A stretch of 60,586 nucleotides of DNA from contig NW_019217960.1 of assembly GCF_002571385.2 (NCBI RefSeq), positions 381,199-441,784 on the forward strand, in the 5' to 3' direction. The DNA comes from Stylophora pistillata (lineage: Eukaryota). This document shows, piece after piece, positions 1-29,442 of the stretch. The stretch's first letter is position 1; each line of letters opens with the position of its first letter. The translations under genes were made by a program, and so were the position numbers. A model generated the notes under the pieces. That model was not told the origin of the DNA. It was given only the letters and a program-made list of their open reading frames with translations, and made no database searches.

Positions 1-479
1 AAGGCTGATAGTTTCTAAAGAAACTGTTTGGCGCTGCGTCGGTGGGGGTAACGAAATAATTTGAATATATCAACAAAGTTGAAATGGTAAATTGGCCACC
101 GTTACGGCTATAAAAGCTGACGTTTCGAGCGTTAGCCCTTCTTCGGAGCGTATAGAAGAATTGTGGGTTGTGTGTGCTTTTAAAGGCAGAAAATGGAGCT
201 ACGTGATTGGTGGGGACATGGGAACGAGAATTTTAATTTATTCGTGTTTTTCTCGTTGCCATGTTCCCACCAATCACGTAGCTCCATTTTCTGCCTTTAA
301 AAGCACACACAACCCACAATTCTTCTATACGCTCCGAAGAAGGGCTAACGCTCGAAACGTCAGCTTTTATAGCCGTAACGGTGGCCAATTTACCATTTCA
401 ACTTTGTTGATATATTCAAATTATTTCGTTACCCCCACCGACGCAGCGCCAAACAGTTTCTTTAGAAACTATCAGCCTT
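1..479. mobile_element. Palindromic Penelope-like element end (inverted pLTR arms) carrying hammerhead motifs
   Basis: 1-230 is the reverse complement of 250-479 with 2 mismatches; same family at 15733-15975 and 23072-23283. Confidence 0.75.
331..364 (+). ncRNA. Minimal type-I hammerhead ribozyme, core variant (CCGAAGA-A..GAAAC-GUC); mirror copy at 116-149 on minus
   Basis: Stem I GCU/AGC, stem II GGGC-UAAC-GCUC, palindromic ACGU stem III. Confidence 0.6.
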
Positions 480-598
480 CAACCTAAGTTATGTTTGGTA
501 GTAGATAAACAGAGACATCTGAAACTCCTTTCTGGCCTTGCCTGTCATGTTGTTTAATGCACTGTGCTTTTCTCTCCCACTTTATTTTTCTCTTTTAG

Positions 599-664: not shown

Positions 665-3600
665 GTAAGTATCACACAGTGTAGTGATATCTCCTGAACA
701 GCAGTGGTGTTGTTGTAGTTTTAGGTAAACGAAGATCAAACCTGTTATGAGGATCTAAAAAATTCCCACCATTAGTTTTATCTGATGAATTTTTTTCTTC
801 GCCAAGTAGTGTCATAAGTAATGTTAGTTTTTGTTACTCCAATAAAAGTTTGTGCTTCGGCTGATTTTTCGTTTATTTATTTGTTTTTAGCAACCTAGGG
901 AATAACCGGATAGAGAATCTTGGTCAAGACTGTTTTGGTGGACTCCCAAAGCTAGGAACTTTGTAAGTAGCCATTTAAGATACAACTGAGTACAGTTACA
1001 ATAGTGCACTGACATGCCCATACTTGGCTGCTTAATCTCGAGATAATTTCTGAAACTTGTGAGGTGATGAGAATATGAAAAGGCTCAGGTTAAAAAAAAT
1101 TCCCGATAAATGATCGAAAACTGTTACATTTACTATGAAATCTTATTTCAATTTTCTTTTAATGTCCAAATTTCGCGAAGATTTATATTTAAAAACATGA
1201 CCCATCACTTTCACTGAGATATGTATCGTGTGCACACTATGACTTTTATTTGTTTTGCAGACATCTTAATAACAACAATTTCGCTTGCGACTGCAACGTC
1301 TATAACTCCATTGTCGCTGTCATAAATGCCCTTTCTCAGAGTAGGGCTGCGACTTGCGCTTCTCCATCTCGTGTAGCTGCTGTAGAATTTTATCCTGGAG
1401 GATCTTATGAACTACAACCTGTTCAGGATTTCACATGCTGTACGTATTATATTATTTTCCTTCATTTACTTTATCCAAGACCTCTGTCCATAATCTATAC
1501 GCTTAAACAGTTTTATTAATGTTTAAAAATGCATGATCGGAAGCGTGCAGTTGATTATTTAACTTTTCTCTCTCTTCCCTCTAGCACCGGTGAATATTAC
1601 TGCAACAGCCCCGGGAGATTTCCAGCTGAGAGTGGACTGGTCACGACCCTCCTCACTTTATCCGCCACTCATAGTTGATAAAAACACTACTTATACGGAT
1701 ACGTGGAGTATTACGACTGTAAATGTCCTCAGGTTTACTTAACTTGTAGATACAACTAGTTGAAGATGTTTTTCTAAAAAGAATGGAGTAAGAGCTTTAC
1801 TGTTAAACTTAGTTAAGATGTATCCTTCTGGAACAGGAAAGGGGGGCTTCATGGTTATGATAATTTGTTCTGTTCAAAAACACCAGAAAATCAGGTTTTC
1901 CCCTAAACCTGAAAATTCCATAAGTTTTAAAATTGTATTATCCTCGCTTATTGGTGACTGTTAGTCAAAGAAAAATGAAATTAAACCCACAATTAGCTAT
2001 AATTGAACACACTTATTCCAGAAAAAAAAAAGAATTAGCAAAAAATTGACAAAGTGTCTGGCTTTGCAGTTCTTTCTTCCTCTCTCTGTTGATATTAAAC
2101 TCTTAGATTGTCACCTGCCTTAACACTGTTGTCACTGCTATTATCACCCTTGTCATGGTTATTACCTCATAATTATGTACGAGGCGGTGGGCTGGTATAT
2201 AGCACTCTCCTCCAAATGGAGAGGTCCTGGTGCAAGCCCTGGCAGGGTCATTCTTGTGCTATAAACTTTGCTCTAGTGGTGCTTCGCTGTGCCGAAGTGA
2301 GAGGCATAACTACCGACGAACTGTCTTGGAAATATGATGAAATGGTGGAAGTTATTTGGCTCAAGAGGTTTCCCTTGGACCTTTGACAAGTACTCTTGAT
2401 GTTGCTTAGACATCGTACCATGTTTAATATCAAAGCGCTTTTCATACTATTCGATTTTGTTTATCATAGGTCATAAGTGTGGGGTACAACTCAACGTGCG
2501 ACAGCGCAGACGCTCCGTCACTCTTTGGCTCCACACAAAGCGAGTTTATCTTGTTTGTTCAAGCCGATGGTGTCCAAGCAGGGATTGACTATGTGTGCTA
2601 CGTAACCATGACAGTAACAGCCTATAATGGGACAAACCAAGATAACAGTACTCAAGGCGAAATTGAAACTCAGACCTCCCCTAAAAGTGAGGAAGCAACT
2701 GTTACTACATTAGAAGGAAAAGGTAAGTATACGCTTGGAAGGGTGTCGCAATGAATATTATTCCCTCCTCCACGTTTTGCCTAAATTTTATCGAGAGAGA
2801 AATTCAAGACCTGAGATCTTCTACAGACCTCCTCCGAAAGAAAACGGTTGCAAAGTTATTCTTATGCTCAAGACATTTCGGGTATCGGTATTGATGTTAT
2901 ACTAATTGCACGTGTTTTCCGAACTTTGCGCTCACCTGAAATCTCCGAAAATTGGAGCAGAAGAAGAAAAAATGTCCTCAAGCTTTTATCGCATCCAAAT
3001 CTCAGTGCCTGAGGCTGTCCAAAAAGTTGTTTTCATGATATGCTGATGCGCTTGTGGGGCCAAATAGGAATAATTTCTTAGTTCCAGTATTTTGAGATTT
3101 GTTGTGGGAGTGTTTAATAAAAGTTTGCAGTATAAGATTTTTTAAATTTTACTAAAGCAAGAAAAAAAAGGCACTTGAAAGATCCTTGATGAAGAATGAC
3201 GACAAAAGCAGCAAAAAGCTCTCAAAATATTAATGAATAATCATTTTCCCGGATACCCAGGCCTGTCCTGAAACAAAGCTCAATGCAAGGCCTTCGATAC
3301 AGAAATCAACTCTTACCCTCTCTGGCCTCAGTTTCACAGTGAGACTATCAAGAACTCGCAAATGACCTTTTCTTTTAAAATTTAAGTGAGCGTTCAACTC
3401 ACTGATGTTTTTGTTTTCTTTCAATCAGCTCCTGTGACCAATGTATCGCTAAACAGTTCCAGTTACTACTTGGACATTATTTATTACGATTTCCAGTAAG
3501 TTGATGTGATTCATGACAATACTTAGAAGGGCGGATCGCGACTGACCTTGCCATTTCTTTGTAATATTTTCATCGTTTGGAATGCTTTTTGTTATGACAA

Positions 3601-6600
3601 TTCTCCATTAGTATATACGCCATCGTTAGTCAAAATGTATAGAAGAGATGGTTGTTTGAGTAATAAGATATTCAGTTTAATGGCATTAAGGTGTCAGACC
3701 ACTGAGAAGAAACTGTTCCACATTGCCTCGTAGTAATATGTAATTTTATTATACTCAAATGTGGTGTGGTGATCACAGATTGAAGTACCTCAGACGCTAT
3801 AACTTTACTTTGACCCCGCTTAGCTGTAGTCGCGTTTGCTATTTTGGTTACTTTGAGGGCTCTAAACTTGAATGTTATTTTGAGAAAAGTTGTCTTTTCA
3901 AAATATCAGTCAAACAAACAAACAAACTAGAATGATTTCCGTACTTTTAATGAAATTATCCTTAACTGGCTTTTTGTTACCTCGTTTTCTAATAGGAGCA
4001 CTTCAAGACCTCTAAGGGTTTGATATTTGTTGCAATTTTCATGTGGGTAACATCTGTAAAATTTTGTTCAGGTCTTCCCATGTTGATTTCACTGGTCTTG
4101 GTGCATTCAGAGGTGATCTGTATCGAAATCCCCAATATGTTCAGAGCCCTTATGGCAGCTGGTTGTCCATATCAAGCAGCCCTACCTCTGATAGTTTCTC
4201 TCAGTGGTTTAGACGTTTTTCCAGCCAGAACTATCATTATGAAGAGAAGTTCGAGCTAGGAAAACAGCTGGAGAGAGATGCAAATGGGAATACGGTGTTC
4301 CGGCATTACAACGACAAGTTCTTCCCAGTTGATGGCCGTGGATGGGGTGCAGAAGGACAGAGGGACTGCTATACTAATGCACTTAGGAACTATGGGTATG
4401 GATTTTTTTAGACTCAATTGCCTTTTGTTTGTCATTGGGTGTGTTTCTTAGCTATAAGACTACTGTCAGAATGAAATGCAAGGAATTGTGTCAAGTCTTT
4501 TTTACCTGCTATGTTCCTTTTTCAGCTTGCAGCTCACCTCGTTGACGTTTCTATTCCTATTGAAACCCATGGGCCTAATGACCTCAAAGAGACTTCAAGT
4601 CTTAGACGTTTAGTATGGGAGGAGACTAAAAGGGGGTGGAAGATATAGCAAACCTAATGGGATGTCTAGGATTCCCTAAAGATTGGAAACAACTGAGTAG
4701 ACATAGTAAATGTGTGACAATGAAATAAACAGAAGTATAGCGAATGCTACATGATTTAATTTCAATTTTTCAGTTTCACTGCTGCAATAAGTACCGGATT
4801 CAACTTTTCTGGTGATGAAATTTTTTCCTTCTCTGGCGGTGAAGAATTGTGGGTATTCATTGACAAGAAACTGGTGGTGCAGATATTTACTGATCCATCA
4901 GAAACGGATGTTCCATGTCGTTCTATAAGTTTAGCTGATGTTGGTACGACTCAAAGTTTGTGATACAGTTCACTCCTACTTAATTTGATACGATCTAAAA
5001 CGTTTGCAGATTCACTTTACCCCCGTCGAGAGGGGGTCTGGGGAATGTTACCAAGAGTGAGTGGGTGGGATTATGGGAGATCATAGAAATCATCATACCC
5101 TTGTCTGAAGAAAAGGTCATCATTAAGCCGTGAGAATAAGGCTAAAGATGGAGCGGAAAAGAACTAGCCTTTTTTTTTAAGTTGACACCATAGAGGTAGT
5201 TCTTAAATTAGCAAAGTAGAGTACCATTCATGAGAAAGGGGATGGGGAATGGGAGGGATGGTGCACGGACGCTGTTGTACCTTTAATTTCCACCTGTGTT
5301 GTGTTTAATGTACACGCTTTACGGACCTGTTTTACATTTTGCTGTTTTGTTTTCAATTAAACCACTGGGCTATGCTTTCTGGAAGTCAAACAGTGGCACT
5401 CGGGTTTCACTTTCTCTTGCATAAAAATGACCCGTGGATTGGCAAAATCTTTATAAAAACGAAAATGAAAATGTATTTATTTATGATGCAGTCGAAATCC
5501 AGCCACGTTATATTAGAAACTCGATATAGGTGAGTTTTAACCATGTCTTACAAAAGTTAACTTACAGTGACATCTCATATTGTAGTATGTGTTACAAGTT
5601 TGTTTTACTGATCTTGCAGCTTCGACTGAGTCTGTTATTCCTCAAAATGGAACAGTAATCGGAGGAAAATGCCAAGTCACAGGGGCTTTACAAGCAGAGA
5701 AAGTTAGCTTATCTCTTAAGGTAATAACTTCATTGAGAAATGTTGTGATCTGAGTTTGGAATTCCCTTTTCTGTTCTTTTCATACTTTATTTGTAGTGTT
5801 CTTGTGCGATCTATACTACTTCTTTCAGGCTCTGATGTTCTGTTTTGGTCCAGTTCAGTCTGGTTTAGTCTTTTATAGTCTATTCTTGTCAAATCTAGAG
5901 TAGACGAGTCCCATCTAGTCATGCCAGTATAGTATAGCCTGATTTGGTTTGTCTCGTTATAACTGGACCATTAGACTAGTCTAGTCAATTTCTAGTCTAG
6001 ATTATTTCATCCCAATCGGTTCTAGTCAAGTAAGGACTAAACTTATCCAGTCTGATCTAGACTTGTTTAGCCCAGCCTCTTTTCGTTCGGTTTGTTTAAG
6101 AGAACCAATCAGGTCGATCTTTGGCAGTGAAGGTTAGGCAGGTTACGCATGTTTGGGTTTTGTCTTCTAAAGATTAGTCTGGTTATGGCTGGTTTGGTCT
6201 GTTCTGTTCTTATTTGCCTTAAGTTGGTGTGGTCAGATCCGTTTTGGTCTGATTTGATCCATTTTGTTTGCAGTTCTCACTTTCGCCGGTCTGATTTAAT
6301 CTGGTTTAGTCTGTTCTTGATTATATAATCCCTGTTCTTGATTATACAATTCCTCTTCTTGATTATACAATCCCTGTTCTTGATTATACAATCTCTGTTC
6401 TTGATTATACAATCCCTGTTCTTGATTATACAATCCCTGTTCTTGATTATACAATCCCTCTTCTTGATTATACAATCCCTCTTCTTGATTATACAATCCC
6501 TGTTTAGACGTCTAATTCTGTCTGGTGTTACTTAAAGTTACTCTAGTGCGGACAATTCGGTTTCTTCATGAAATAGCAAGGCGGGTGAAGTTTGGCGTAC

Positions 6601-9600
6601 AATTAGGGATGTAGCGAAGGGTAAACGACAATACAATCATAAGAATGTTGAGATGAAGCCACTGACCACGATTTCACCTCCTATTTTTGAATGATCTAAT
6701 TTAATTTAGGTGAGAGTAGTTTAGTTTATCAGTTTCTTTCAAAACAAACCTTCATTCTAACTCTTAGCGTTTTATTGCCGTTCCCTGAAGGTGAATGAAC
6801 CATACCGTTTGGATGTATTCGTCGCTGAGAGATTCCTATGCAACTCACACATTTTATTCCAGTCAAGTGGCGCTTCATTCCTTCCACCTCTTGACTATGT
6901 GGCTACTGTCAGTGAGAACGCACATGTTGGCGTTATTGTGCAGGTGAAATGTTTGTTTTCTTGTTTCTACCCAACCATACGAAGAAATATTAAGAAAAGG
7001 GTGTCTCTTACAGACTCTGATATGAGTTAGGGGTTGGTCAGTCTTCGACTTTAGTTTTATCATTGTTATTTGTGTTAACTATCAACTTAAAAACAAACTT
7101 TGGGAACTCCTATCGTTTCAAACTTGTGTACTTCATACCGCAAAGCGACTTCGAACTTATTCGGAATACTGTCGGCGATAAGTCGAAACTCACTGATAAT
7201 CGAGTGGTTTATCTCCTCAAAGACGTCGTAAACACTGAAACACATCATCAACACTGGTGTAAGCTGCGCGAATAACTTCGTGTGACACGATTTTCTATCT
7301 AACACATATATATTGTCGTTCACTCACTGATTTCTTCGCATCTGGTCTAGAACGTTCATATTGGAGACGCTTTCTCGTCTGGGCCTTACAACGTCGACAT
7401 TTTGGAAGGAAATGAGCAAGACCGATTCGAAATTAAAAATGGGGCCTACGCAGCACCATCTGCACCCACCACTCCTTCTCCGCCCACTTTTATCCTTGAC
7501 GGAGAGTCAATTGTGTTGTGTCCCAATGCTACTGATGATCGAGTACTTCCAATACCTTCAGTTAATTCAGGTAAGAAGCAATGATAAAACCAGGTCTGTT
7601 TCAAGACGTGCTTAATGTGTGTGGACCAAGTTAACGTTATATTTCAGACAGGGTGACTCGTGATGTGTGCACCAACATTAGCACTGGCATTGGAAATTAA
7701 TTGTAATTGGGAGCAATATCCTTTTAGGTTTAAACTTTTACTTTTGCAAACCGACTGAGGATAACAATCATAATATCAAGTCTGAAAGTATCGAAGAGAA
7801 ACTTTGTAGAAAACAGTATTCTGGGCTTCATTTTGAATCTGTTTCCTTCTCGTATCAGTCATAACAGATAGGTTTCGTGTACCATTTTTATACTAAACAG
7901 ACAAAATGTGCTGCTCGACTCTAAGGCATGTTTTGTTACATGAAACTCATATTTATCTCTTTCACTTTGACTCCCCAGGAATTCAGTCATTCACCTCCAT
8001 TGCCACATCTATAGCTAAACTAACGCTGAAAGAGCCTTTGGATTTTGAGTACACCTCATATTATCTGTTATACCTAAGGATAACCGATACTGTTAAAGGA
8101 TGGACAGGCAACATTTCAATCAAAGTAAGTTATTAGTTTTTTTTCGTTTTCGTGGTAGTTGTAAGAAGAGCTTGTAGCTAATGGTCATTCCCTAGATACA
8201 TGTAATCCCCACCTTTCCCCCTCTTTCTTACGTCACTAACTCGCCTCGCAACTACAAACATTTTAATGCACACAAAAAATTGCTTTCGACTGAAATCTTT
8301 GGAAAAAATCTTAGCATTTATTTTACGATGATAGTTTTATAACTTTACGATGATAATTAAAACAGATAAAGGAGAAGAAGTGAAAAGGAAGGGGATGAAA
8401 TGTCATCCCTGGAAGTATTATACCAAGATCTTTGTGCTAAATGAAGTGGGAGGTTAACACATGCAAATTTTTGTGAAGGTTGTGATATTTTATCCTTTCT
8501 GGTCCCACCCGCGTGCAATACAATAATTTCTAAAATGATCAACTGTTTGGTTTGGATCCCTGGTATTTTGTGCTTCTGTAGGTTGTTGTTGAAGACTACA
8601 ATGATCACTGTCCATTTTTGAAAGAAGTCAACATAGATTTAGACCTGGAGCCAATCCCACCACTTCGCAAAGAAGCGTTCTTCACGGCTGTAGCCACTGA
8701 TAAAGACAGCGGTGTGAACGCTCGGATCACATACAACGTTAGCGAACCAGAGAGAATGTGCGTAAAGTGCAGCATAGATAAATAGATCATTTATATAGTC
8801 ATATCAGACTAGTTTTAATCTCTAAAGAAAAGCTTATGCTGAGGTCGCTACGAAGTCCAGGCTGCCTCATCATGATTTTCAGGTGTTAAAATTCGTAAAG
8901 GTATAGAAAAGTGATAAATTCTCCTTGGAAATTAATTTCATTGAAGAGTAAAGTTAAGCCACATGGCGTGTCGTTAGATATGATCACTTGTTGCCACAGT
9001 GATTCGTCGAGGATTGTAAATTAAAGCAGGGAGGTGTCCTTCAACAATATTATTGCAAATATGTCTTTCATGGTGCTTCCAAGTTAGCTTTTATATTTTT
9101 TCTTGTACCATTGTTGAGATAGGTAATTGTTCCATGGTTTATTGTAGTTATAGTGGTGTGCAGCGACCAGGAGCATATATAATCCGTCTGGACGAGANNN
9201 NNNNNNNNNNNNNNNNNNNNNNNNNNNNNNNNNNNNNNNNNNNNNNNNNNNNNNNNNNNNNNNNNNNNNNNNNNNNNNNNNNNNNNNNNNNNNNNNNNNN
9301 NNNNNNNNNNNNNNNNNNNNNNNNNNNNNNNNNNNNNNNNNNNNNNNNNNNNNNNNNNNNNNNNNNNNNNNNNNNNNNNNNNNNNNNNNNNNNNNNNNNN
9401 NNNNNNNNNNNNNNNNNNNNNNNNNNNNNNNNNNNNNNNNNNNNNNNNNNNNNNNNNNNNNNNNNNNNNNNNNNNNNNNNNNNNNNNNNNNNNNNNNNNN
9501 NNNNNNNNNNNNNNNNNNNNNNNNNNNNNNNNNNNNNNNNNNNNNNNNNNNNNNNNNNNNNNNNNNNNNNNNNNNNNNNNNNNNNNNNNNNNNNNNNNNN

Positions 9601-12600
9601 NNNNNNNNNNNNNNNNNNNNNNNNNNNNNNNNNNNNNNNNNNNNNNNNNNNNNNNNNNNNNNNNNNNNNNNNNNNNNNNNNNNNNNNNNNNNNNNNNNNN
9701 NNNNNNNNNNNNNNNNNNNNNNNNNNNNNNNNNNNNNNNNNNNNNNNNNNNNNNNNNNNNNNNNNNNNNNTCCTCTTTTCATTTTCCTCATATTTTTTTC
9801 TATTCTATACCTAAAATATTGTCGTATTTAATAGTCCGCACATCAACGCCACGAAGTTTTATGTCAATAATGGTACTGAGGTGGTGTGGAGCAATAAGAC
9901 TGTGAAATGGACCTACAAATACTTCGTATTTGCTGTGGATGGAGGTTCACCAAAACGCGGTGATGGTATCCCTTTGAATATCACATTTGATGCTACTTGC
10001 GAAGTGACGGGGGCTGTTGTAGCTGATCCAGGTACTGGTGAGGTGTTCTTTAGAGCGCCTGGGCTTACAGGATCTGAATACCGTAAGTACCTCATAAGAA
10101 GCGTACACTATTTAACAATTGTTCTATCAGTACGCGTCGGATATTAAATGCTAAATGGCCACAACTATCATATCCTAAAACTGGTGCTTTTGCTTTTGTT
10201 GTAATTTGGACTCTAATCATCCAAATCCGCTTCGAACATTGCAAATAAACACTTTGTTTAATCTGCAAAAAAAAGAGTGGATGTGTGATCCATGGTATAT
10301 AAGCTCAAATGGCTCATTCTGAAGACCATTCAAAGAGCAGGATTGGCTAAGTTTTAAGGTCAACTGTTTTCCGTAAGAAAGAAATGCAGGCTCAGTGTAT
10401 TGCCTATCTTGCCAATGAGCTCTCTGTAGCTGATTTGGTAGGATATTATACAATTAGCATGGCCCTAAAAGAAGGTTGGCAAAAACTTTCTTTTGCTCCT
10501 CTTCAAACCTACATTGCCACCGAATTTTCAGCGAACTAAAGAATGAAAGATATGTTTTTTAAACTGAATCTTGCAGTATTGTGGTAACCACAATATTTCT
10601 ATTCAACCTCTAGCTTTAAACTCCACCGAAAAGCCGAGATGTCGCGGGTGCACTCATGGATATTTCTGTGTTGGAGATGGAACTGAAGAGCGATGTGGAC
10701 TCGCTTCACCAACAGAATTCTCCTTTGGTTCCGCAGCGACATGTTCACCTTGTCCCGAGGGATGGGTAAGTGGATGTAGTGTGCTTATTTCTAGGAAAGA
10801 GTGGGAGTGTTTTGAAGTTTTTTCACTAGCCTGTACCGACCGAAACCTTTGATTTTTGGAATGTTTATTTAATCTTAAAAGCACCCTCGAATCCCCACGT
10901 GTCCCAATAGGTTGTGTTTCGATAAGCGAGAGCACCAAGCGTTACATTACCTGTGCATTCTATTTTCAGCTCTGTGTGAATGGTACCGCGCTCCCTTGTC
11001 CAGAGAGTACACATGTCAAGTGCAATTCAACGGTGGGTGTCCTACAAAATATTCTTTCCACAGAATCATTATTGCAACGACAGTGGTTGGCATTAAAACA
11101 GACAAACTAAGCAGGGTCAAATGTGCCCGGGAACATCGAACCCGATGAGTATTTCGTTGAATTTCTAGTGGTAAGCGCAGCAGCGGATTTTTTATCGTAC
11201 TGACCTCAGAATTGAGCTCCAGCTTGACCGGTTTCGTTGTATCCTGTTCTTGAGCAAGATACTTTACTTTCAATTAGTGTGTCTGTGACCCTAAAAAGAA
11301 ATATCATTAAATAAGCACCATATGCATGACATGTCACGGAAACCGGGAAATAACTCCAACATAACCTGGCAAGTGAGTCATTAAACTACCAGATGCCACT
11401 TTGCAATAAATTTCGACTCCGTCCGGAAGCTTCTACTTAGTTTGGAGAACAGATTTTAGCTTTTGATTAACGATATTTCTCTTGTCTTGCTAGTGGTGCC
11501 CCGAGAATTGCTTTGACTGTGAACCTGGTACAGTTTGCTTTGAGGGAAGGAAGCACGACTGCACACCAGGACGATACAGCGATGGAAAAGGTTGGTTCGA
11601 AGTTTGGCGGTTGTTGTCGATGAGAGCTCACAATCATGATATGAAAATAGCTTTGCAGATTTTGCAGACATCAACCAGCACTACACTAAAAACACGCACG
11701 CGTCTTTCAATATGAATAAGCCTAGAATTGAGAGTACCAGTTCGTTACTAATCATATTCAAGTCCAATTGATTCACGATATGTATTATTTAGGACTTAAA
11801 CGAGAGCTGTGTGTGAAGTTTCTCTAAGCGAACTAAGAAAATCTGCTCGCAATGATAATTTACACTCTGCTGGAACGAATTTTCGTTTCTTTTCTCAGGC
11901 TTCCCATGTACGCTTTGTCCTCCGGGTAGCTTTAATAACGTGTCTCGTGCACAAACCTGTGAGTGTTGCCAGGATGGTTACACCAGCACATACATGAAGA
12001 CCAGTTGTCGGCAATGTCCTGCCAATGAATGGGCAAAGCACGGAAGTTTCCCGAACTGTTCCATGTGTCAGACTTGTTTTAATCCTGAGGACTGTGAGTA
12101 TGAATCTCTATATTTGCTTATTCACTGGGTGTTGTCCTGCTATTTTCTTAAGTGATAACATGATATCTCTGACCTATGGCGATGGATCTGCATCCAAGTT
12201 ACGTATATCTCAGTACAAACGGCAAAGCGCAAAAGGGTTCCTATAATTATTCCTTAAAAGGCGATTTCGAACTTTGTCTAATGGTAAACGAGACCAATAC
12301 ACAATGTTAACGAATTTTCTCGTAAAAAAATGCTAAAAAAAAAATGAGTCGCTTCCTCACTTCTTTACCAGAAAACTAAATTTGGGCTCCTTTTCATATT
12401 TAAGAGGTTTTTGAGAACCTTTGGTCATAGAGGGACAAGTTTTTCTGCCATTCTTAATAAATGTGTTCTAGAGCTTATCAAATTTCGCGATTCACTTGTT
12501 CGCTCTTTATAATTTATTCAATAATATTGCCTTTAGCTTAGTCACGTTTTGTTACTTTGCTTTGTTTAAGTTTCTCTCCAAGAATGAGTTTGTAAAATAA

Positions 12601-24600: not shown

Positions 24601-26700
24601 AGTCACTCACTCTATCTGTAAATCAGTCTATAAGTCTAAGCTTTTCAAATACGCTGATTTATGAATAATTGCATTGGACGCCATCAGAAGGATGAATTGA
24701 CAGGATAATGTCTTTTAAGTTATATTATGCTTCTTTAGGAGGAAGCTGACGGTCGACTCACCTATAAGAAGCGAAACTTAGTTTTTTCAAAATTTTAGCA
24801 TGAAATAATTCTTGACAAAATTCACTCTTTTCTCATTTTCAGCCTACCAACTTGAACTTTTTGTAAACGGTTCATCCGTTGGATCAAAGAGTGATGTATT
24901 GCCTCACACCTGGGTAGGTCTCTTTGTAACGTTTGGTTACCTCTAAAGTTCTTTAAAGTAACTCAATATAAAACGAAGGCAAGACTCTTGTTTTTATAGC
25001 TCGAACGAGAGATTGCCGGACTGCAGCGTACAACAATAGACTTCCAGCCTCAGACCCTACCGACTCTCAGGAGTGACTAGCATCTAGTTTCCTTCATGAT
25101 ATCACCCCTGAATCACTCATTAAGGTCACGAGAATAAAGGAAATGATCACAAGCTAAAGAAGCACGTGATTGTCAACTGAAGCAAATTCTTCCTCTTCAG
25201 CCCTCAGGAAATGAATAGGGAACAGTATGGAGAATATGCATACCGATGTTAGAGTGAAAAGGGTTAAAGAATGAACACACTCTTGCAAAATGTCGGGCTC
25301 TTCCATCCCGGTTGGGTAGGGTATGCTCAAAGAAATTAGCCTAAAAAATTTGGGAAAAACTTGAAAAAACGCAGACAGGAAATTAAATTTATGCATAAAT
25401 TCCCACCTTTGGCCTCCTTCACCTCTCTGTAACTTGGAGAAAGTTGAAATTGTATTTCCTATTTTTCTAGTGGTCTTTTAGTGACCTTCTTTTGTTTTTC
25501 TATTTCTCTTTTAGTCGTCTCGTGACCTTCTTTATGTGGGCCGTGACAACAGTAATTACTTGAAAGGAACTGTGGATGACGTAAGTTTGTTTAGTCCTGA
25601 GGTTGCTTTTGTTTTCATTTACCCTCTGAGTTTTCGGAGAACATTTTTCATTGTCAATGAATAGTTACTTTCAATGAAGAGGACTGTGCAACTTCTTGAC
25701 TGCTGTTATAAGAGCCAATTCTCAAAGTTATTCAAACAGGGTAGTCAGTGCGCAGGAGTTGTCGTAAATATTCAAGTAGGAGAACTTGCTCTTACTTTAT
25801 AACAGTCGATATCCAGTCGTTTCGAACCACGGTTGTTTCGTACCCAGTCAATTCGTATTCAAATTCAAGAGAATCAAGTAGGAATCAAATATATTCGGCC
25901 ACCATTATGATATATGACCCCGTTTGATTGTTTAGCAGCCCCTCTCGACACTGGATTTGAATGCATTACCATGCTTAATCAAACTTTGCCTTGTAATATT
26001 TCACCTCATAAGCAGTTTGATCGTCTAGCTAGCGTGTGTTGTGTGCGACAAACACGATTCTGAACAGAAATATTCCAAGTTTAGGTGGGGCTCAAGCAAT
26101 AACAGTTTCTTTATAAACTTGCCCCCTTTATTTACTTTGTACAGTTGACTCTGTGGGGGGTGTATGTCGAAGACGCGGATATTGTTAATTACATGAAAAC
26201 TGCCGGCCTGTCGTTACCCATCCACAAGGGTGTGGTCAGAGCACATTTCAGTATGGACGAGACTTCTGATTCAATCATTCTTGATCAAGCGGGAAATGGT
26301 TACCATGGAAATCTAATTGGCGGAACAAGTTTCGTCGCGGTGAGTAACGTGTTTGATGGTTCGTGATCTGCTATAATTAGGAAATGCTCCTGTGAAATGA
26401 CTAGTCTTAGGAACCCTTTGAGCAACTTGGGTGTGGCATATTTTGAAGGATATGGGTCTCGCAAATCTTGGGTCCTCGAAACCCAGGGTATCCTGCATTA
26501 TGAAATATGATATTAAATAGGTTGTTGCTCATGTTGTTCGACTTAAAACTGATATTCACGTAATGGAAAAAGTACTGTTTATTTGTTTTGTTTCATAGAG
26601 CTCTGTCGACAAGAACCGTTTTGTACTAACATTCCCAAACAATAAGAGGAGGAGACGAAGAAGTGTAAATACGCCCTGGTCGCAACACAATGAACTCTAG
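599..26700 (+). CDS. Mega-thrombospondin-like secreted protein (5'-partial; 41 coding exons in window, ~1838 aa): LRR, LRRCT, FN3, fibro-slime/PA14, 2 cadherin, GCC2/3-like Cys repeats, 4 EGF, TSP type-3 repeats, TSP C-terminal L-lectin, LamG, furin site + HNEL
   Basis: Hand-spliced exons with GT-AG ends and matching phases; summed length 5518 nt stays in frame to TAG at 26698-26700. Diagnostic motifs: [17 protein letters not shown]...DxDxDGxGDAC repeats, VDFSG...[18 protein letters not shown]. Confidence 0.9.
891..962 (+). CDS. mega-TSP exon: LRR ([24 protein letters not shown])
   Basis: Classic 72-bp phase 2-2 LRR exon, ttttag|...|gtaagt. Confidence 0.85.
1261..1439 (+). CDS. mega-TSP exon: LRRCT cap ([11 protein letters not shown]...C..P...C)
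   Basis: tgcag|...|gtacgt; NxFxCDC motif. Confidence 0.85.
1585..1718 (+). CDS. mega-TSP exon: FN3-like, N-half ([21 protein letters not shown])
   Basis: ctag|...|gtaaat; donor chosen by phase. Confidence 0.75.
2470..2722 (+). CDS. mega-TSP exon: FN3-like, C-half (..[16 protein letters not shown]..)
   Basis: catag|...|gtaagt, open frame. Confidence 0.8.
3429..3495 (+). CDS. mega-TSP exon: start of fibro-slime/PA14 (..LDIIYYDFQ)
   Basis: tcag|...|gtaagt, phase 1-2. Confidence 0.75.
4072..4395 (+). CDS. mega-TSP exon: fibro-slime/PA14 ([24 protein letters not shown])
   Basis: ttcag|...|gtatgg; motifs match the fibro-slime/psi-factor family. Confidence 0.85.
4774..4943 (+). CDS. mega-TSP exon: fibro-slime core ([25 protein letters not shown])
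   Basis: ttcag|...|gtacga. Confidence 0.85.
5620..5720 (+). CDS. mega-TSP exon: insertion within fibro-slime domain
   Basis: tgcag|...|gtaata, phase 1-0 fits neighbours. Confidence 0.75.
6311..6504. repeat. 21-bp minisatellite (TTCTTGATTATACAATCCCTG) x9
   Basis: Direct inspection. Confidence 0.95.
6791..6943 (+). CDS. mega-TSP exon: end of fibro-slime ([10 protein letters not shown]) and start of cadherin 1 ([12 protein letters not shown])
   Basis: gaag|...|gtgaaa. Confidence 0.85.
7351..7570 (+). CDS. mega-TSP exon: cadherin 1 (GNEQDRFEI) with Pro/Thr insert
   Basis: ctag|...|gtaaga. Confidence 0.8.
7979..8124 (+). CDS. mega-TSP exon: cadherin 1 ([19 protein letters not shown])
   Basis: cccag|...|gtaagt; LDxE motif. 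Confidence 0.85.
8582..8757 (+). CDS. mega-TSP exon: cadherin linker/cadherin 2 ([23 protein letters not shown])
   Basis: gtag|...|gtgcgt; DxNDxxP and AxDxDxG motifs. Confidence 0.85.
9198..9770. other. Assembly gap (573 N)
   Basis: N run. Confidence 1.
9835..10082 (+). CDS. mega-TSP exon: cadherin 2 end ([13 protein letters not shown]..)
   Basis: atag|...|gtaagt; phase 2 matches the preceding exon. Confidence 0.8.
10614..10765 (+). CDS. mega-TSP exon: Cys-rich GCC2/3-like repeat
   Basis: ctag|...|gtaagt; CxxGxFC..CxPCPxGW. Confidence 0.85.
10970..11032 (+). CDS. mega-TSP exon: Cys-rich ([21 protein letters not shown])
   Basis: ttcag|...|gtgggt. Confidence 0.75.
11494..11590 (+). CDS. mega-TSP exon: Cys-rich ([32 protein letters not shown])
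   Basis: gctag|...|gttggt; restores phase; absent from the ORF track. Confidence 0.8.
11899..12093 (+). CDS. mega-TSP exon: ephrin-receptor-like/GCC Cys repeat ([19 protein letters not shown])
   Basis: ctcag|...|gtgagt. Confidence 0.85.
12671..12801 (+). CDS. mega-TSP exon: EGF 1 ([27 protein letters not shown])
   Basis: ttag|...|gtagga; TSP-type EGF. Confidence 0.9.
13313..13528 (+). CDS. mega-TSP exon: EGF 2-3 ([14 protein letters not shown])
   Basis: acag|...|gtgagt. Confidence 0.9.
13989..14138 (+). CDS. mega-TSP exon: EGF 3-4
   Basis: acag|...|gtatgg; [15 protein letters not shown]. Confidence 0.9.
14705..14809 (+). CDS. mega-TSP exon: EGF 4 end / first type-3 repeat ([12 protein letters not shown])
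   Basis: ttag|...|gtaagt. Confidence 0.9.
14891..14995 (+). mobile_element. LINE 3'-end fragment with (TTA)n tail
   Basis: Shares CCTGTAAACTAGCT..TAAG..TTT..CCAC.TTAAA with the LINE 3'UTR at 40311-40353. Confidence 0.55.
15283..15390 (+). CDS. mega-TSP exon: TSP type-3 repeat
   Basis: gcag|[17 protein letters not shown]..|gtaagt. Confidence 0.9.
15625..16072. repeat. Older degenerate palindromic hammerhead-bearing repeat, host of the above insertion
   Basis: gactgacgtttggacg.. inverted against ctctgatgatgac..tcgagacgtcagtc. Confidence 0.5.
15733..15975 (+). mobile_element. Penelope-like palindromic insertion with 13-bp direct repeat ACTCTGATGATGA (15720-15732 / 15976-15988); hammerhead variant at 15827-15860
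   Basis: Near-identical to the 1-479 family; inverted 5' part; flanking direct repeat. Confidence 0.75.
16167..16329 (+). CDS. mega-TSP exon: TSP type-3 repeats
   Basis: ccag|[23 protein letters not shown]..|gtaaga. Confidence 0.9.
16886..16998 (+). CDS. mega-TSP exon: TSP type-3 repeats
   Basis: gtag|..[23 protein letters not shown]..|gtacgt. Confidence 0.9.
17489..17544 (+). CDS. mega-TSP exon: degenerate type-3 repeat ([19 protein letters not shown])
   Basis: gtag|...|gtgagt, phase 0-2. Confidence 0.8.
17571..18272. mobile_element. MITE/fold-back element with ~200-bp terminal inverted repeats
   Basis: GGTTACCGTGCACCTTCAGGGG.. at 17571 inverted against ..CCCCTGAAGGTGCACGGTAACC at 18272; no clean TSD. 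Confidence 0.8.
19487..19572 (+). CDS. mega-TSP exon: TSP type-3 repeat
   Basis: ttcag|[12 protein letters not shown]..|gtacat. Confidence 0.9.
19802..19915 (+). CDS. mega-TSP exon: TSP type-3 repeat
   Basis: atag|[14 protein letters not shown]..|gtaaac. Confidence 0.88.
20245..20420 (+). CDS. mega-TSP exon: last type-3 repeat / start of L-lectin
   Basis: gtag|..[18 protein letters not shown]..|gtatgt. Confidence 0.88.
20805..20862 (+). CDS. mega-TSP exon: TSP C-terminal domain ([20 protein letters not shown])
   Basis: ccag|...|gtttgt. Confidence 0.8.
21483..21673 (+). CDS. mega-TSP exon: TSP C-terminal L-lectin ([18 protein letters not shown])
   Basis: gtag|...|gtaaaa. Confidence 0.9.
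21746..21820 (+). CDS. mega-TSP exon: L-lectin ([14 protein letters not shown])
   Basis: acag|...|gtgagt. Confidence 0.9.
21909..22006 (+). CDS. mega-TSP exon: L-lectin ([17 protein letters not shown])
   Basis: tcag|...|gtaaca. Confidence 0.9.
22221..22364 (+). CDS. mega-TSP exon: L-lectin end (GGRLG..Q..VIWS.L..RC)
   Basis: ttcag|...|gttagt; frame stays open past the usual TSP C-terminus. Confidence 0.9.
22466..22842 (+). mobile_element. tRNA-derived SINE
   Basis: A-box-like TAACTCAATTGG and B-box GGTTCGAGCCC head, unrelated body, (TAAAT)n tail. Confidence 0.75.
23072..23283 (+). mobile_element. 5'-truncated Penelope-like copy with 13-bp TSD TCTTAAATAAGCA (23059-23071 / 23284-23296)
   Basis: Matches 270-479; hammerhead copy has a GTC>GAC change. 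Confidence 0.75.
23550..23630 (+). CDS. mega-TSP exon: LamG/ConA-like start ([11 protein letters not shown])
   Basis: gtag|...|gtgctt. Confidence 0.85.
23878..23982 (+). CDS. mega-TSP exon: LamG (FTISTWV)
   Basis: tgcag|...|gtatga. Confidence 0.85.
24076..24173 (+). CDS. mega-TSP exon: LamG (WHHLAYRYD)
   Basis: ctcag|...|gtaaga. Confidence 0.85.
24328..24420. repeat. (CACT/CAGT)n microsatellite
   Basis: Direct inspection; degenerate CAGT/CAAT flanks 24225-24630. Confidence 0.9.
24843..24913 (+). CDS. mega-TSP exon: LamG (LELFVNG)
   Basis: ttcag|...|gtaggt. Confidence 0.85.
25052..25267. mobile_element. Degenerate MITE ending ..AAAGGGTTAA
   Basis: Resembles an abundant coral TTAACCC..GGGTTAA short element (from memory); left TIR decayed. 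Confidence 0.45.
25515..25580 (+). CDS. mega-TSP exon: LamG ([13 protein letters not shown])
   Basis: tttag|...|gtaagt. Confidence 0.85.
26145..26339 (+). CDS. mega-TSP exon: LamG end ([18 protein letters not shown])
   Basis: acag|...|gtgagt. Confidence 0.85.
26599..26700 (+). CDS. mega-TSP terminal exon: [33 protein letters not shown]
   Basis: catag| phase 0, TAG at 26698-26700. Confidence 0.8.
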   Translation, partial: SSVDKNRFVLTFPNNKRRRRRSVNTPWSQHNEL

Positions 26701-29442
26701 GAATAGGAAACTTGTTGTTGTTGTTATTTTATTTTTTTTTTTTTATTTTTTACAATTCTTTTTGGTTGAACACTCACAAATGTCAACTTGAACAATATAA
26801 ATGTAGAACGTGCTTAGTATGCTTCTGATGCAGGCCGCTAGCAACTGTTTTTGACCTTTTTTGAACTATTTATTGTATTTAAGGTACACTAGGTTGTGAA
26901 AGAACTCATATTTTTGATACGTGAAATTGATGTTATTTGATTGAGTGATAATGTTTATTTAAAGCTTTTTGCATAATACTAGTCTTCGAAGTCGAGCTGA
27001 TATTAAGTCTTTATTAAGAAAAAATTTTTCCAATCGTTATTTAGTTTCACTCCATTCGCTAAAACAATTTTGAATTCTAAAAGTTACTGAAAGTATTTTG
27101 TGCTTTTTGATAGCATACACATGTACGTGTTGCAGACAAGAAAAGTACACAATGATATTTATATTTGTTTACTTCTTCAAAAGTTACAAGCGATTTTATA
27201 TTTGCAACCAAGGTCAAAATTGAGGGAAAATTCCCTCTTTCCCACCTCTAAATGTTGGTGACGCGTAAATTGGACTCCACCAAAACAGTCCAAAATTGAT
27301 CAGTTAACACATACTTTTCCTTGCAACATGGTACGGCTCGTACTGAATCCAGCGAACAGTTAATGGAAATAGATAGTTACCAACTCAGAAAGTGTTGATC
27401 AAAGAATTTACTTGAAAGTATATTACAGCTTTAATCATAGTAGGGCCGGAGTGAAACGGATTGAAAACAAAAATTGTAGAGTTGACTGTTCGTACTTGTT
27501 GTCTTGTTTTGGAGGCTAAGTTATTTAAATCAATGGTGTTTTATTTGATCTGTGGTAGATTCTAAGTTATTTAGACAGCATTCGCTTATCTATATTTCCA
27601 TGTGACTGTGACACTTTTCTATCGAATTCCTATCAAAAGATGCAACGAGAAATGTAAGTCAGAACCAGGTTTTTAGAGGGCGATTTGCATTACTCCAAGT
27701 TTAGCTGTTGAGATATAAGCATATGGCTTTTCTATACAGTTAAACATAGGGTTACTGTAAGCCGGAGTTTCGAGCAACTCAAGCCGGGTATATCACTGAC
27801 AGATGTAATTATACGATAGAAGAAATCGACGGAGAAGAAGTAACAACTGATTTCTTGAAGGAGTTTGAAATGTTTATTTTTGATAGCCATTAGTATTACG
27901 TAGTATATTTTGTAAAATGCAGGCATTTGACGTTTTTCAGCACCACGAGAATTGTCAATAAACAACGTTAAGGTTAACCAAAAAGAGTCATTGTTTCTTA
28001 GCTTTTGGCAAGAGGATCAAAATTTCGGTTTTTCATCGCATTGCATTCATACCATGCGTACTATTGTAGAGTACGTTATGCAACTGATATAATTTTGGGA
28101 AATTTCAGCGCACCAAGTGGTTCCCAATCCTTAGAGATACTGAGGAGACAATTTACTTGACCCTCCTCGCCCCCCCCTCCCCTCTTTCCCTTTTTTGTTA
28201 ATGTTCTTTTTGTTTTTACTTTAGTCTCGCCGAAAACAATAATCACATTAAGAAAAAGAAGTAAGTGAAAGATGAGTGAAATGAAGAGAGAATTTTTCTT
28301 TTTTTTCTTTTTATTGATTCGATTTTTGTTTTCGTTTGAAGTAAGCTAGTTCCGGTGAGGGAAGTTTTACCATTTTCAAACCTTGAATTTGTTGGAAATC
28401 CCTGATTGAGGAATACCTCTCGATACAACTACTGAGTGAAAAAATCAAATTTGAAATTAACATTCTCTTTCAATAGAATGATTGTCAGATTCGAGTGAAT
28501 AAAAAAGAAGAATATCTACAAATCCACAGAAAAATCAATCAAGTCAAGATTTAATTTATCCTTTAGATTTTATGACTAAATACACGCAGTTAATTCTACT
28601 ATTGGATTTTAATAGGTTTTTTTATGTTATTTATGGCTTCGTTGCTCCACTGGAATAAACAAACCTCGAGGTTCTTCTTTAGCAACCGTCTCATAAAACC
28701 CAGCTGGAAAACTAGTTATTCCTGGTTACAAATTCTACCAGTAAATATGTTTGGAGCTCTGACGATGTGTAAGTACCAGAGTGACGTTCCAAGAGGTACT
28801 TCGCAAGAACCAACTTTTTACACATTCACCTTTGTTACTCATGAAATCAGCTTCAACCACAAAAGGACTACTTGATAGAATGTGCGGAACTAAGGGAAAC
28901 TACATCTGTCTGATGGTCTGCTTGTTTGATTGTTTGAAATTATGCTAACGTAACAATACTACTCTTGAAAGAACTAGTAACAGATTTCTTCAAAAAAAAA
29001 AAGAAAAACTCAACTTTCTAAAAATGATACAAGAGAAGTCTAAAGAGTTGGACGTAATATTGTTATTATTTGTCATATCTCTCCAATCTCCATGCCATGC
29101 CTTTATGTGGTTCTGGTGGTCTCAAACCCAAAGGCCGCGCGTAGGATATGCGGTGTTCTCATTTTTCTGCAAAGCAGTAAAAGTTCTATCAATTAAGATG
29201 GTGCAGTCACACGAGCAAAAGAAAAATGGTATTCATAACTGCACAACTTACAGCAGAGAATTTAATTAGCAAAATAAAAAATACGGCTCTTATTATAGAG
29301 TAGGTATACTTGCGAGGGCGTTTGTGTATTAAAATTTTTATTTTATTTTACGAGGCTCAACAAGAGCAATATTATTATGGTCATACTGAATGTGCGCTAC
29401 TGGAAGACTTGAAGCTTTGTTCTCAGGGGTGGTTGGAACTTT

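Follow-up and report, generated by a model that had tools for sequence, protein, structure and literature searches.

Does the very large, matrix-type protein encoded by LOC111331710 (XP_022792613.1) of the stony coral Stylophora pistillata end in a signal for return to the endoplasmic reticulum (ER), and could this signal be removed by a protease? Part of the gene lies in a stretch of 60,586 nucleotides of contig NW_019217960.1, here called the window. A preliminary description made from the sequence alone had read it as a giant thrombospondin (TSP) with a dedicated tail of 33 residues as its last exon, in which a polybasic run is followed by HNEL and the stop codon. It further proposed that the protein is held in the ER until a convertase removes the tail. 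The exon and its two motifs were found as described, in the sequence and in RNA (Table 1).

Gene, product and 3'-end

Of the S. pistillata mega-thrombospondin (mega-TSP) gene, the 3' two-thirds fall within the window. An ortholog of 2799 aa from Pocillopora verrucosa (P0168) is collinear with the window from position 892 to 26691 (tblastn), and the C-terminus of the RefSeq model (P0156) is identical to the tail encoded in the window. A matching first exon with a signal peptide is located 34 kb upstream (L042:5809-6105) and is collinear with the ortholog P0155; the upstream portion of the gene is partly N in the assembly.

The product, about 2,800 aa long, is probably routed through the secretory pathway and comprises a signal peptide, leucine-rich repeats (LRRs), cadherin and ephrin-receptor-like modules, EGF, TSP type-3 repeats, TSP_C, and a second ConA-like domain. 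Pfam searches identified EGF_CA (2e-07) and TSP_3 (8.9e-08) besides the TSP_C matches listed in Table 1, as well as a complete Laminin_G_3 domain (1-151/151, E 9.9e-19) in the spliced ortholog P0047. The cadherin exon of the window had no Pfam match when searched alone. The N-termini of orthologs of 2,762-2,812 aa are signal-peptide-like, and LRR and cadherin are among the precomputed Pfam families of these orthologs; signal peptides were found in P0155, P0159, P0161, P0163-P0165, P0167, and P0168. By this domain composition, and by the second ConA-like/LamG domain and short terminal sequence that follow TSP_C, the product is a member of the mega-TSP family. A canonical thrombospondin (TSP-1 to -5/COMP) was ruled out by the approximately 230 residues located beyond TSP_C (ConA-like 2, extension, and tail) and by an N-terminal part made up of LRR.

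According to Shoemark et al. (2019, Mol Biol Evol), the L-lectin/TSP_C domain of mega-TSPs is followed by another ConA-like domain and then by a terminal sequence; cnidarian members are listed from Acropora, Porites, Nematostella, Hydra, and Exaiptasia (PMC6526912). This only paper on the family treats them as extracellular matrix (ECM) proteins, without a secretion test. The reading as a giant thrombospondin is corrected to that of a mega-TSP, for which the continuation behind TSP_C was already known.

The splice junction proposed for the last intron, 26339>26599, was borne out by RNA. A GT..AG joint 26338/26339 > 26598/26599 is present in assembled RNA contigs of X1, X10, and X11, and 14 raw X24 reads with 11 different starts contain the same joint. 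In the genomic sequence, GTGAGT directly follows the upstream exon end and AG occupies 26597-26598. An AG two bases downstream, which had been considered as a rival acceptor, is not among the RNA joints listed. The RNA contigs form a chain from 22219-22364, the last of the TSP_C exons and the only one of these with RNA-checked borders (joint 22364>23550), through the five exons coding for the second ConA-like domain and the penultimate exon to 26599 and onward. Because they run uninterrupted from there to 27858-27920 (27920 in X11) and past 28149 in X10, the exon at 26599 is terminal and carries a long 3'-UTR. RNA depth in the intron amounts to about 2% of the exon depth, so that a tail-less form resulting from intron retention is minor at most. 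Variants at 26673 and 26676 in the X10 and X11 RNA are both synonymous. Spliced cDNA-like contigs from other species (L020, L022, L027, L029) share the exon-to-tail junction.

Table 1. Features of the mega-TSP gene in the window and the basis of their assignment.
Feature	Position	Strand	Basis or remark
Mega-TSP gene (LOC111331710), part inside the window	892..27858	+	Residues ~980-2799 of full-length Pocillopora ortholog, plus 3'-UTR
Exons for TSP C-terminal (L-lectin-like) domain	21464..22364	+	Pfam TSP_C, E 1.6e-21 and 1.4e-15
Five exons of second ConA-like / Laminin_G_3 domain	23550-23630, 23878-23982, 24076-24173, 24843-24913, 25515-25580	+	RNA joints
Penultimate coding exon, 65 aa, phase 0/0	26145..26339	+	RNA joints
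Last intron, 259 nt, GT..AG	26340..26598	+	Sequence and RNA joint
Last coding exon, 33 aa, in frame (phase 0), its last 18 residues holding basic run, spacer and HNEL	26599-26697	+	Sequence and RNA
First 15 codons of last exon	26599..26643	+	End of conserved extension, not a linker; alignment
Polybasic run KRRRRR, candidate proprotein-convertase site	26644..26661	+	Sequence, ortholog conservation
Variable spacer SVNTPWSQ	26662..26685	+	Little conservation among tails
C-terminal HNEL, candidate KDEL-type ER-retrieval tetrapeptide	26686..26697	+	Fits PROSITE [KRHQSA]-[DENQ]-E-L
Stop codon TAG	26698..26700	+	Sequence
3'-UTR, minimum extent (at least 1.2 kb)	26701..27858	+	RNA contigs and depth

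Conservation of the tail and the preceding extension

The comparison of C-termini suggested in the preliminary description covered 28 distinct ortholog and paralog tails, all named species being scleractinians. They belong to two paralog clades sampled from Stylophora, Pocillopora, Acropora, Montipora, Porites, and Oculina, with three additional sequences that show only about 40% identity in the preceding exon. The two clades had diverged before the lineages of Acropora and Stylophora parted, and both are represented in the S. pistillata genome.

Both motifs are kept in all 28 tails. Each of them contains R-[RK]-[RK]-R followed by S, D, or N, in agreement with the furin/convertase consensus R-X-[KR]-R. 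In S. pistillata the cut is predicted after 26661, where KRRRRR is followed by SV, ahead of the Ser at 26662-26664. The P1' residue is S in 23 tails, N in 3, and D in 2, and P2' is V, I, or L in 23 of the 28; this combination of P1' and mostly aliphatic P2' residues suggests a protease site and not simply a patch of basic residues. The AF2 model has a pLDDT below 50 in the tail region including the basic site, a value that would fit exposure and flexibility of this segment but does not demonstrate them.

At the C-terminus, E at position -2 and L at -1 are invariant (28/28), and position -4 is H in 27 tails and K in one (KQEL). Eight different residues (N/S/V/G/E/Q/M/R) were found at position -3. 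Besides HNEL, the tails end in HSEL, HVEL, HGEL, HREL, HMEL, HEEL, or KQEL, all of which fit the extended KDEL code. The KDEL-receptor code accepts every residue except Pro at -3 (PMC2140024), and at the sequence level the constraint on the tails matches this experimentally mapped code. HNEL was correctly named as a KDEL-receptor signal: in RAP it acts via ERD2/KDEL receptors (PMC13753777, citing Bu et al. 1997), and the ER retention of LSDV003 is mediated by HNEL, too (PMC13753777). Raykhel et al. (2007) reported that many proteins with KDEL-like ends are located in the ER even without those ends and that some of these motifs retain weakly (PMC2140024).

The spacer between the two motifs comprises 2-13 aa and is little conserved in sequence, with a partly conserved aromatic residue (W/F/Y). 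Among further sequences, a distant relative from a Tara metagenome (L010) retains the conserved extension described below but has neither motif, and an xEL end is missing from the Desmophyllum model P0158, perhaps owing to an annotation error.

With the last coding exon a conserved module of two linear motifs is added, a predicted furin-type site followed by H-x-E-L. Whereas the terminal sequence of mega-TSPs was called 'nonconserved' (PMC6526912), our comparison reveals such a two-motif module at least in stony corals. The terms KDEL and furin each have 0 occurrences in that paper. No earlier account of this arrangement was found, in line with the preliminary description, which knew of none for TSPs.

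The tail is preceded by a conserved extension of about 80 aa starting in the penultimate exon, which encodes the end of ConA-like 2 and the extension with the pattern AGLxxPIHKGxVRAH...GNxxHGxL. This exon had 152 library matches, the best of which were the same exon in other species. The extension reaches into the last exon, where S1, D4, R7, F8, P13, and N15 show little or no variation. The notion of a dedicated tail exon therefore holds for the basic site and HNEL, but the first 15 residues belong to the extension. In the AF2 model the second ConA-like domain has a pLDDT of 80-96; for the extension no fold was predicted, although it is conserved. The part of the extension in the penultimate exon resembles the lead-in of a LamG_3 repeat.

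A proposed removable ER-return tag and its alternatives

From the tail we infer receptor binding, cleavage, and a coupling of the two. 'Hold-and-release' by a removable C-terminal tag is plausible, and we regard its being right or wrong as evenly balanced. The full-length precursor would be bound by the KDEL receptor in the cis-Golgi and returned to the ER, and the longer stay there would fit a very large, disulphide-rich, Ca-binding protein. In the late Golgi or trans-Golgi network (TGN), a proprotein convertase would cleave escaping molecules at their basic site. This cut would permanently remove the retrieval signal, and the mature protein would be secreted without it. The genome contains a KDEL-receptor gene with several exons (C42:316231-320016) and 36 matches to proprotein-convertase P domains. 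Furin-type enzymes are mainly found in the TGN, and KDEL retrieval takes place mainly from the cis-Golgi. An efficient retrieval signal would thus hold most molecules away from the protease, which speaks against hold-and-release. The findings of Raykhel et al., the relative L010, and the Desmophyllum model P0158 count on the same side.

More tentatively, and with somewhat less confidence, we propose that mega-TSPs of stony corals, possibly of all anthozoans, may carry an ancient, purpose-built removable ER-return tag, in which a KDEL-receptor ligand sits some residues after a convertase site, with retrieval setting the ER dwell time of the giant Ca-binding protein and a single late-Golgi cut leading to irreversible export. 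In a variant of this proposal the freed H-x-E-L peptide would report cargo flux to the KDEL receptor. If true, the removable tag would be the first case in animals of an ECM protein with a conserved retrieval signal that a protease can take off, and an ancestral function based in the ER would be tied to the thrombospondin superfamily.

The main rival to hold-and-release is a resident or dually located mega-TSP, of which H-x-E-L would keep a substantial pool in the ER and Golgi for an intracellular job, e.g. a chaperone- or escort-like role or one in the ER stress response. The basic run would then serve another purpose, such as tuning of receptor binding, glycosaminoglycan binding, or a cut only after leakage. 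We consider such a pool rather unlikely. It accounts for the conservation of positions -4, -2, and -1 in the same way as hold-and-release, and retrieval operates upstream of the compartment in which furin is active. RAP, an escort chaperone of the ER, carries HNEL as its signal (PMC13753777), and vertebrate Thbs4 has documented roles in the ER and the secretory pathway (PMC5063588). However, conservation of the basic site is no less strict than that of H-x-E-L, and the site always lies 2-13 residues upstream of it and has protease-like P1' and P2' residues. Moreover, EGF, TSP type-3 repeats, cadherin, and LRR are domains characteristic of extracellular proteins, and mega-TSPs as a family have been called ECM-related (PMC6526912).

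We assign a still lower probability to conservation that has nothing to do with the KDEL receptor. The tail may be a C-terminal propeptide or a partner-binding motif freed or exposed by a convertase outside the ER, its likeness to H-x-E-L being coincidental. Convertase-released C-terminal peptides are common in secreted proteins, the spacer contains the partly conserved aromatic residue, and, since the extension is conserved without a predicted fold, an interaction module is presumably present anyway. Yet freedom at exactly -3, combined with fixed -4, -2, and -1 positions and a free carboxyl end, is the signature of KDEL ligands (PMC2140024) and unexpected of a binding motif, and neither sequence nor length of the spacer is conserved. 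Chance or neutral sequence and a wrong gene model, finally, are very improbable. An end of the type [KRH]-x-E-L is expected in about 1/1,000 proteins (our estimate from average residue frequencies), but both explanations are refuted by RNA joints in 4 runs, by the identical RefSeq C-terminus, and by the occurrence of both motifs in every tail of two clades that split before the Acropora-Stylophora ancestor.

Comparison with known proteins

A removable retrieval tag of the kind proposed for the coral tail is known from the plant KDEL-tailed cysteine endopeptidases CysEP and SH-EP, in which the tail on the precursor is removed proteolytically at maturation. These differ from the coral protein in kingdom, in the protease involved, in their route by ER-derived vesicles to the vacuole, and in that the tail is lost at a site not of the furin type.

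The coral tail belongs to the same class of C-terminal tetrapeptides as those of RAP/LRPAP1 (HNEL) and the liver carboxylesterases (HIEL, HTEL, HVEL), whose H-x-E-L ends are standard ER signals (PMC5818367). These are small proteins resident in the ER that have no convertase site next to the tetrapeptide, whereas the coral protein is giant, matrix-type, and multidomain, its basic site lying 6-17 residues from the end. For the partly retained secretory proteins MANF (RTDL), CRELD2 (REDL; PMC11358006), and AGR2 (KTEL; PMC2140024), a KDEL-like end and receptor capacity govern release. They are small, and they leave the ER through saturation or because the motif is weak, not through proteolytic loss of a tag.

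In architecture and size of about 2,800 aa the coral protein equals the mega-thrombospondins (PMC6526912). With the canonical TSP-1 to -5/COMP it has EGF, type-3 repeats, and TSP_C in common, and Thbs4 likewise acts in the ER (PMC5063588). Canonical TSPs, for which a coiled coil is characteristic, differ from the coral protein in their N-terminal LamG domain, in ending right after TSP_C, and in lacking LRRs, a second ConA-like domain, and an xEL end. Orthologs of Acropora cervicornis are listed at NCBI under the misnomers 'COMP' and 'Thrombospondin-4'.

Terminal exon of the mega-TSP gene

The coordinates and translation that the preliminary description had given for the C-terminal tail of the mega-TSP gene LOC111331710 were correct on re-reading of the window sequence. 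For 22150-28149 the sequence was compared with three assembled RNA contig sets and one raw-read set of the same coral species. The junction 26339>26599, for which an RNA check had been proposed, was found with GT..AG borders in all four sets, the raw reads contributing 14 reads with 11 different starts. Eight exons were chained by RNA contigs (22219-22364, 23550-23630, 23878-23982, 24076-24173, 24843-24913, 25515-25580, 26145-26339, and 26599 onward). No further joint was found 3' of 26599 in contigs extending to 27858-27920 and, in one run, past 28149. Since these contigs are unbroken, the exon is terminal and the 3'-UTR is at least 1.2 kb long. RNA depth in the last intron was approximately 2% of exon depth; hence, a tail-less form resulting from intron read-through, which has its stop at 26364, is at most minor. 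Two RNA runs contained the tail variants 26673 G>C and 26676 C>A, both synonymous, and the UTR of the contigs carrying them differed at about 3-4% of positions.

Features of the mega-TSP terminal region and further features of the window (window coordinates)
Feature	Position	Strand	Remark
Interspersed repeat, copy within mega-TSP gene	83-487	+	
Tandem repeat	6310-6532		unit LDYTIPV
Interspersed repeat, copy within mega-TSP gene	15783-16028	+	
Interspersed repeat, copy within mega-TSP gene	22852-23286	both	in mega-TSP intron
Tandem repeat	24195-24665		unit SLTH
Penultimate exon	26145-26339	+	ends ...GTC GCG, then GTGAGT; 65 aa
Acceptor AG	26597-26598	+	sequence reading
Last exon	from 26599	+	phase 0, in frame, 33 residues; sequence reading
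First 15 residues of last exon	26599-26643	+	[15 protein letters not shown]; conserved end of extension
KRRRRR	26644-26661	+	basic run
Spacer SVNTPWSQ	between KRRRRR and HNEL	+	sequence reading
HNEL	26686-26697	+	C-terminal tetrapeptide
TAG stop	26698-26700	+	sequence reading
Region of neighbouring genes	30800-37100	-	opposite strand
Exons with HYR/sushi-like repeats	~30.8-37 kb and 41.5-42.7 kb	-	
Retroelement reverse-transcriptase open frame	38538-39077	+	
Region of neighbouring genes	41500-49450	-	opposite strand
Exons with LDL-receptor YWTD beta-propeller-like repeats	44.1-49.4 kb	-	
Retroelement reverse-transcriptase open frame	59408-60553	-	381 aa

Gene architecture and the extension preceding the tail

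Single exons of the window matched the Pfam models EGF_CA, TSP_3, TSP_C (two exons) and, weakly, Laminin_G_3. Named proteins were reached by searching with the 65-aa penultimate exon and then with natural spliced orthologs. Throughout, window exons served as queries one at a time, and natural spliced orthologs (L020, L022, L027, L002, and the proteins with P numbers) stood in wherever an unbroken protein was required. The C-terminus of XP_022792613.1 ('uncharacterized protein LOC111331710', S. pistillata, 2,229 aa) is identical to that of the window. Full-length orthologs of 2,762-2,812 aa were found in Pocillopora damicornis, P. verrucosa, Acropora palmata, Montipora capricornis, and Oculina patagonica. 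In P. verrucosa, the stretch of the protein between residue 980 (position 892) and the C-terminal residue (26691) aligns collinearly with the window. Two metatranscriptome contigs from other corals (L022 and L027) contain uninterrupted 1,433-codon frames running from a PA14-like region to the tail, which places the domains from the PA14-like region through the tail on one transcript. In its predicted architecture the window gene matches the mega-thrombospondins as defined by Shoemark et al. 2019 (PMC6526912). In these proteins a signal peptide precedes about 1,000 aa of LRRs and a cadherin domain; the TSP C-terminal region and a further ConA-like domain come next, and a terminal stretch termed 'nonconserved' closes the protein (PMC6526912). 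The contrast previously drawn with canonical thrombospondins, which stop right after the L-lectin domain, is true but beside the point, since continuation past TSP_C is already known for mega-TSPs (PMC6526912).

The RefSeq model XP_022792613.1 begins within the LRRs and is about 550 N-terminal residues short of the Pocillopora orthologs. At 34 kb upstream of the window, a segment collinear with that of Acropora (L042:5809-6105; G000:C177:347007-347303) encodes MARYH..., a hydrophobic core, and then VPSHG. This segment is likely the true first exon with the signal peptide; 12.6 kb of the DNA between it and the window, within the upstream stretch C177:341199-381198, are N. In Acropora cervicornis, three mega-TSP paralogs sharing one 4.49-Mb contig (P0152, P0155, and P0157) are publicly named 'Cartilage oligomeric matrix protein' or 'Thrombospondin-4'.

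In the spliced ortholog P0047, Pfam assigned TSP_C to residues 35-234 and a complete Laminin_G_3 to 243-389, followed by 81 more residues. In the window, this extension runs from within exon 26145-26339 through residue 15 of the last exon, and its sequence is strongly conserved (AGLxxPIHKGxVRAH...GNxxHGxL...S-x-VDKxRF...P-x-N). The view of the last exon as a dedicated 33-aa tail therefore holds for its last 18 residues, which form a variable-plus-motif tail, and not for the first 15, which belong to the extension. The middle of the extension is similar to the segment leading into tandem LamG_3 repeats of bacteria, phmmer matches to multi-LamG proteins being the sole basis of this likeness. A homologous-protein search with residues 370-470 of P0047 yielded no match beyond P0047 itself. 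AlphaFold2 was run twice on the natural ortholog L020, from a 26-row and a 44-row alignment; the second ConA-like domain reached a pLDDT of 80-96, and the extension and tail stayed below 50 in both runs. As these values gave no support either way, two candidate readings of the extension (26145-26643) were dropped, namely a circularly permuted strand completing the ConA-like domain before it and the folded relic of another LamG repeat.

A conserved pair of C-terminal motifs

Tails were taken from genomic contigs of many corals, where they were located downstream of the conserved exon and behind an AG acceptor, as well as from directly spliced cDNA-like contigs, named proteins, and a second paralog on contig C526. 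This resulted in 31 tails, of which 28 were distinct. Contigs ending before the tail exon were left out (L003, L006, L008, L009, L013, L016, and L046), and no tail was found within the DNA at hand for L021, L026, L030, L031, and L032. All named species in the comparison are scleractinians.

The ortholog alignment called for in the preliminary description, built from stony-coral and other sequences, contained both motifs in every distinct tail. The basic site R-[RK]-[RK]-R was present in 28 out of 28. It was followed at P1' by S (23 tails), N (3), or D (2), and at P2' by V, I, or L in 23 tails and by A, Q, or G in the rest. The spacer of 2-13 residues was little conserved except for a frequent aromatic residue. 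Position -4 was H in 27 tails and K in one, position -3 was variable (N, S, V, G, E, Q, M, or R), and E at -2 and L at -1, with the stop always next, were invariant. The module was also present in L007 (HEEL), P0047 (HEEL), and P0077 (KQEL), where the preceding exon is only about 40% identical. The second mega-TSP paralog of the same genome (G000:C526:84951-85151, L043:1012-1122) ends in RRRR, a 13-aa spacer, and HMEL-stop. Two paralog clades (SSVDK... and STVDK...) both occur in Acropora, Oculina, and Stylophora; hence, both copies have retained the module from a time before these lineages diverged. It is not universal in the wider family, since the more distant Tara Oceans metagenome contig L010 retains the extension and ends in ...HRTLIHL without a basic run. 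A Desmophyllum pertusum model (P0158) reads RRRRR SLDSWTRHSG followed by about 60 hydrophobic residues and no xEL end; this end is probably mis-called.

The RNA joints in four sets and the motifs in 28 distinct tails rule out both chance and a wrong gene model. The best reading, to which we give about even credence, is that of the preliminary description. The KDEL receptor would return the mega-TSP precursor to the ER, and a convertase of the late Golgi would then cut off the retrieval signal and thus commit the protein to secretion. In a survey of 152 variants, position -4 took K, R, H, and a few others, -3 any residue but proline, -2 strongly E, and -1 preferably L or F (Raykhel et al. 2007, PMC2140024). 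Judged from sequence, the free and fixed positions of the mega-TSP tails are exactly those of this receptor code. HNEL itself is a functional signal of RAP with retention via ERD2 proteins (Bu et al. 1997, as cited in PMC13753777), and the poxvirus protein LSDV003 depends on it to be retained in the ER (PMC13753777). The basic run fits R-X-[KR]-R, with P1' and P2' residues of the protease type, as a putative convertase site. Coupling of site and signal is suggested because the putative cleavage site precedes the signal in every tail, lies near to it, and is equally conserved. The predicted prerequisites for retrieval and cleavage are present, namely a signal peptide in the full-length orthologs, a multi-exon KDEL-receptor gene (C42:316231-320016), and 36 matches to convertase P domains in the genome.

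The main rival, possible if rather unlikely, is a resident or dual-location mega-TSP in which the basic run would serve a different purpose. Residence is favored by the site of retrieval, which comes before the compartment of furin, and by vertebrate Thbs4, which functions within the ER in roles that are debated (PMC5063588); the constant proximity and equal conservation of site and signal argue for the removable signal. A receptor-independent role of the C-terminal peptide is distinctly improbable and fits poorly with the free -3 position.

Thrombospondins are textbook extracellular proteins. An ER-retrieval-type C-terminus with a cleavage site in an early-branching branch of the superfamily would make the question of intracellular TSPs directly testable, and the 35-residue module is transferable to any reporter. 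The gene model, the mega-TSP family, and each motif singly were already known; the conserved pairing of the two predicted motifs at mega-TSP ends is new. In the mega-TSP paper the terminus is described as nonconserved, with no mention of KDEL or furin (PMC6526912); our alignment corrects this view, at least for stony corals. A literature search for a furin-removable KDEL signal yielded nothing relevant, and a search for LOC111331710 or XP_022792613 found no paper and thus no link to a skeleton proteome. The module may represent a general device for very large matrix proteins, a protease-removable retrieval tag. Practical uses could lie in the biology of calcifying coral cells and in engineered secretion of difficult proteins.

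Repeats within the mega-TSP gene

Both tandem repeats are open in all three forward frames; the one with unit SLTH is located inside an RNA-confirmed intron and showed no RNA depth. The three copies of the interspersed repeat have a common translated core (...[26 protein letters not shown]). At about 22950-23349 RNA word depth was 100-1000 times the exon depth, with many inverted joints, indicating that this repeat family is transcribed and very abundant.
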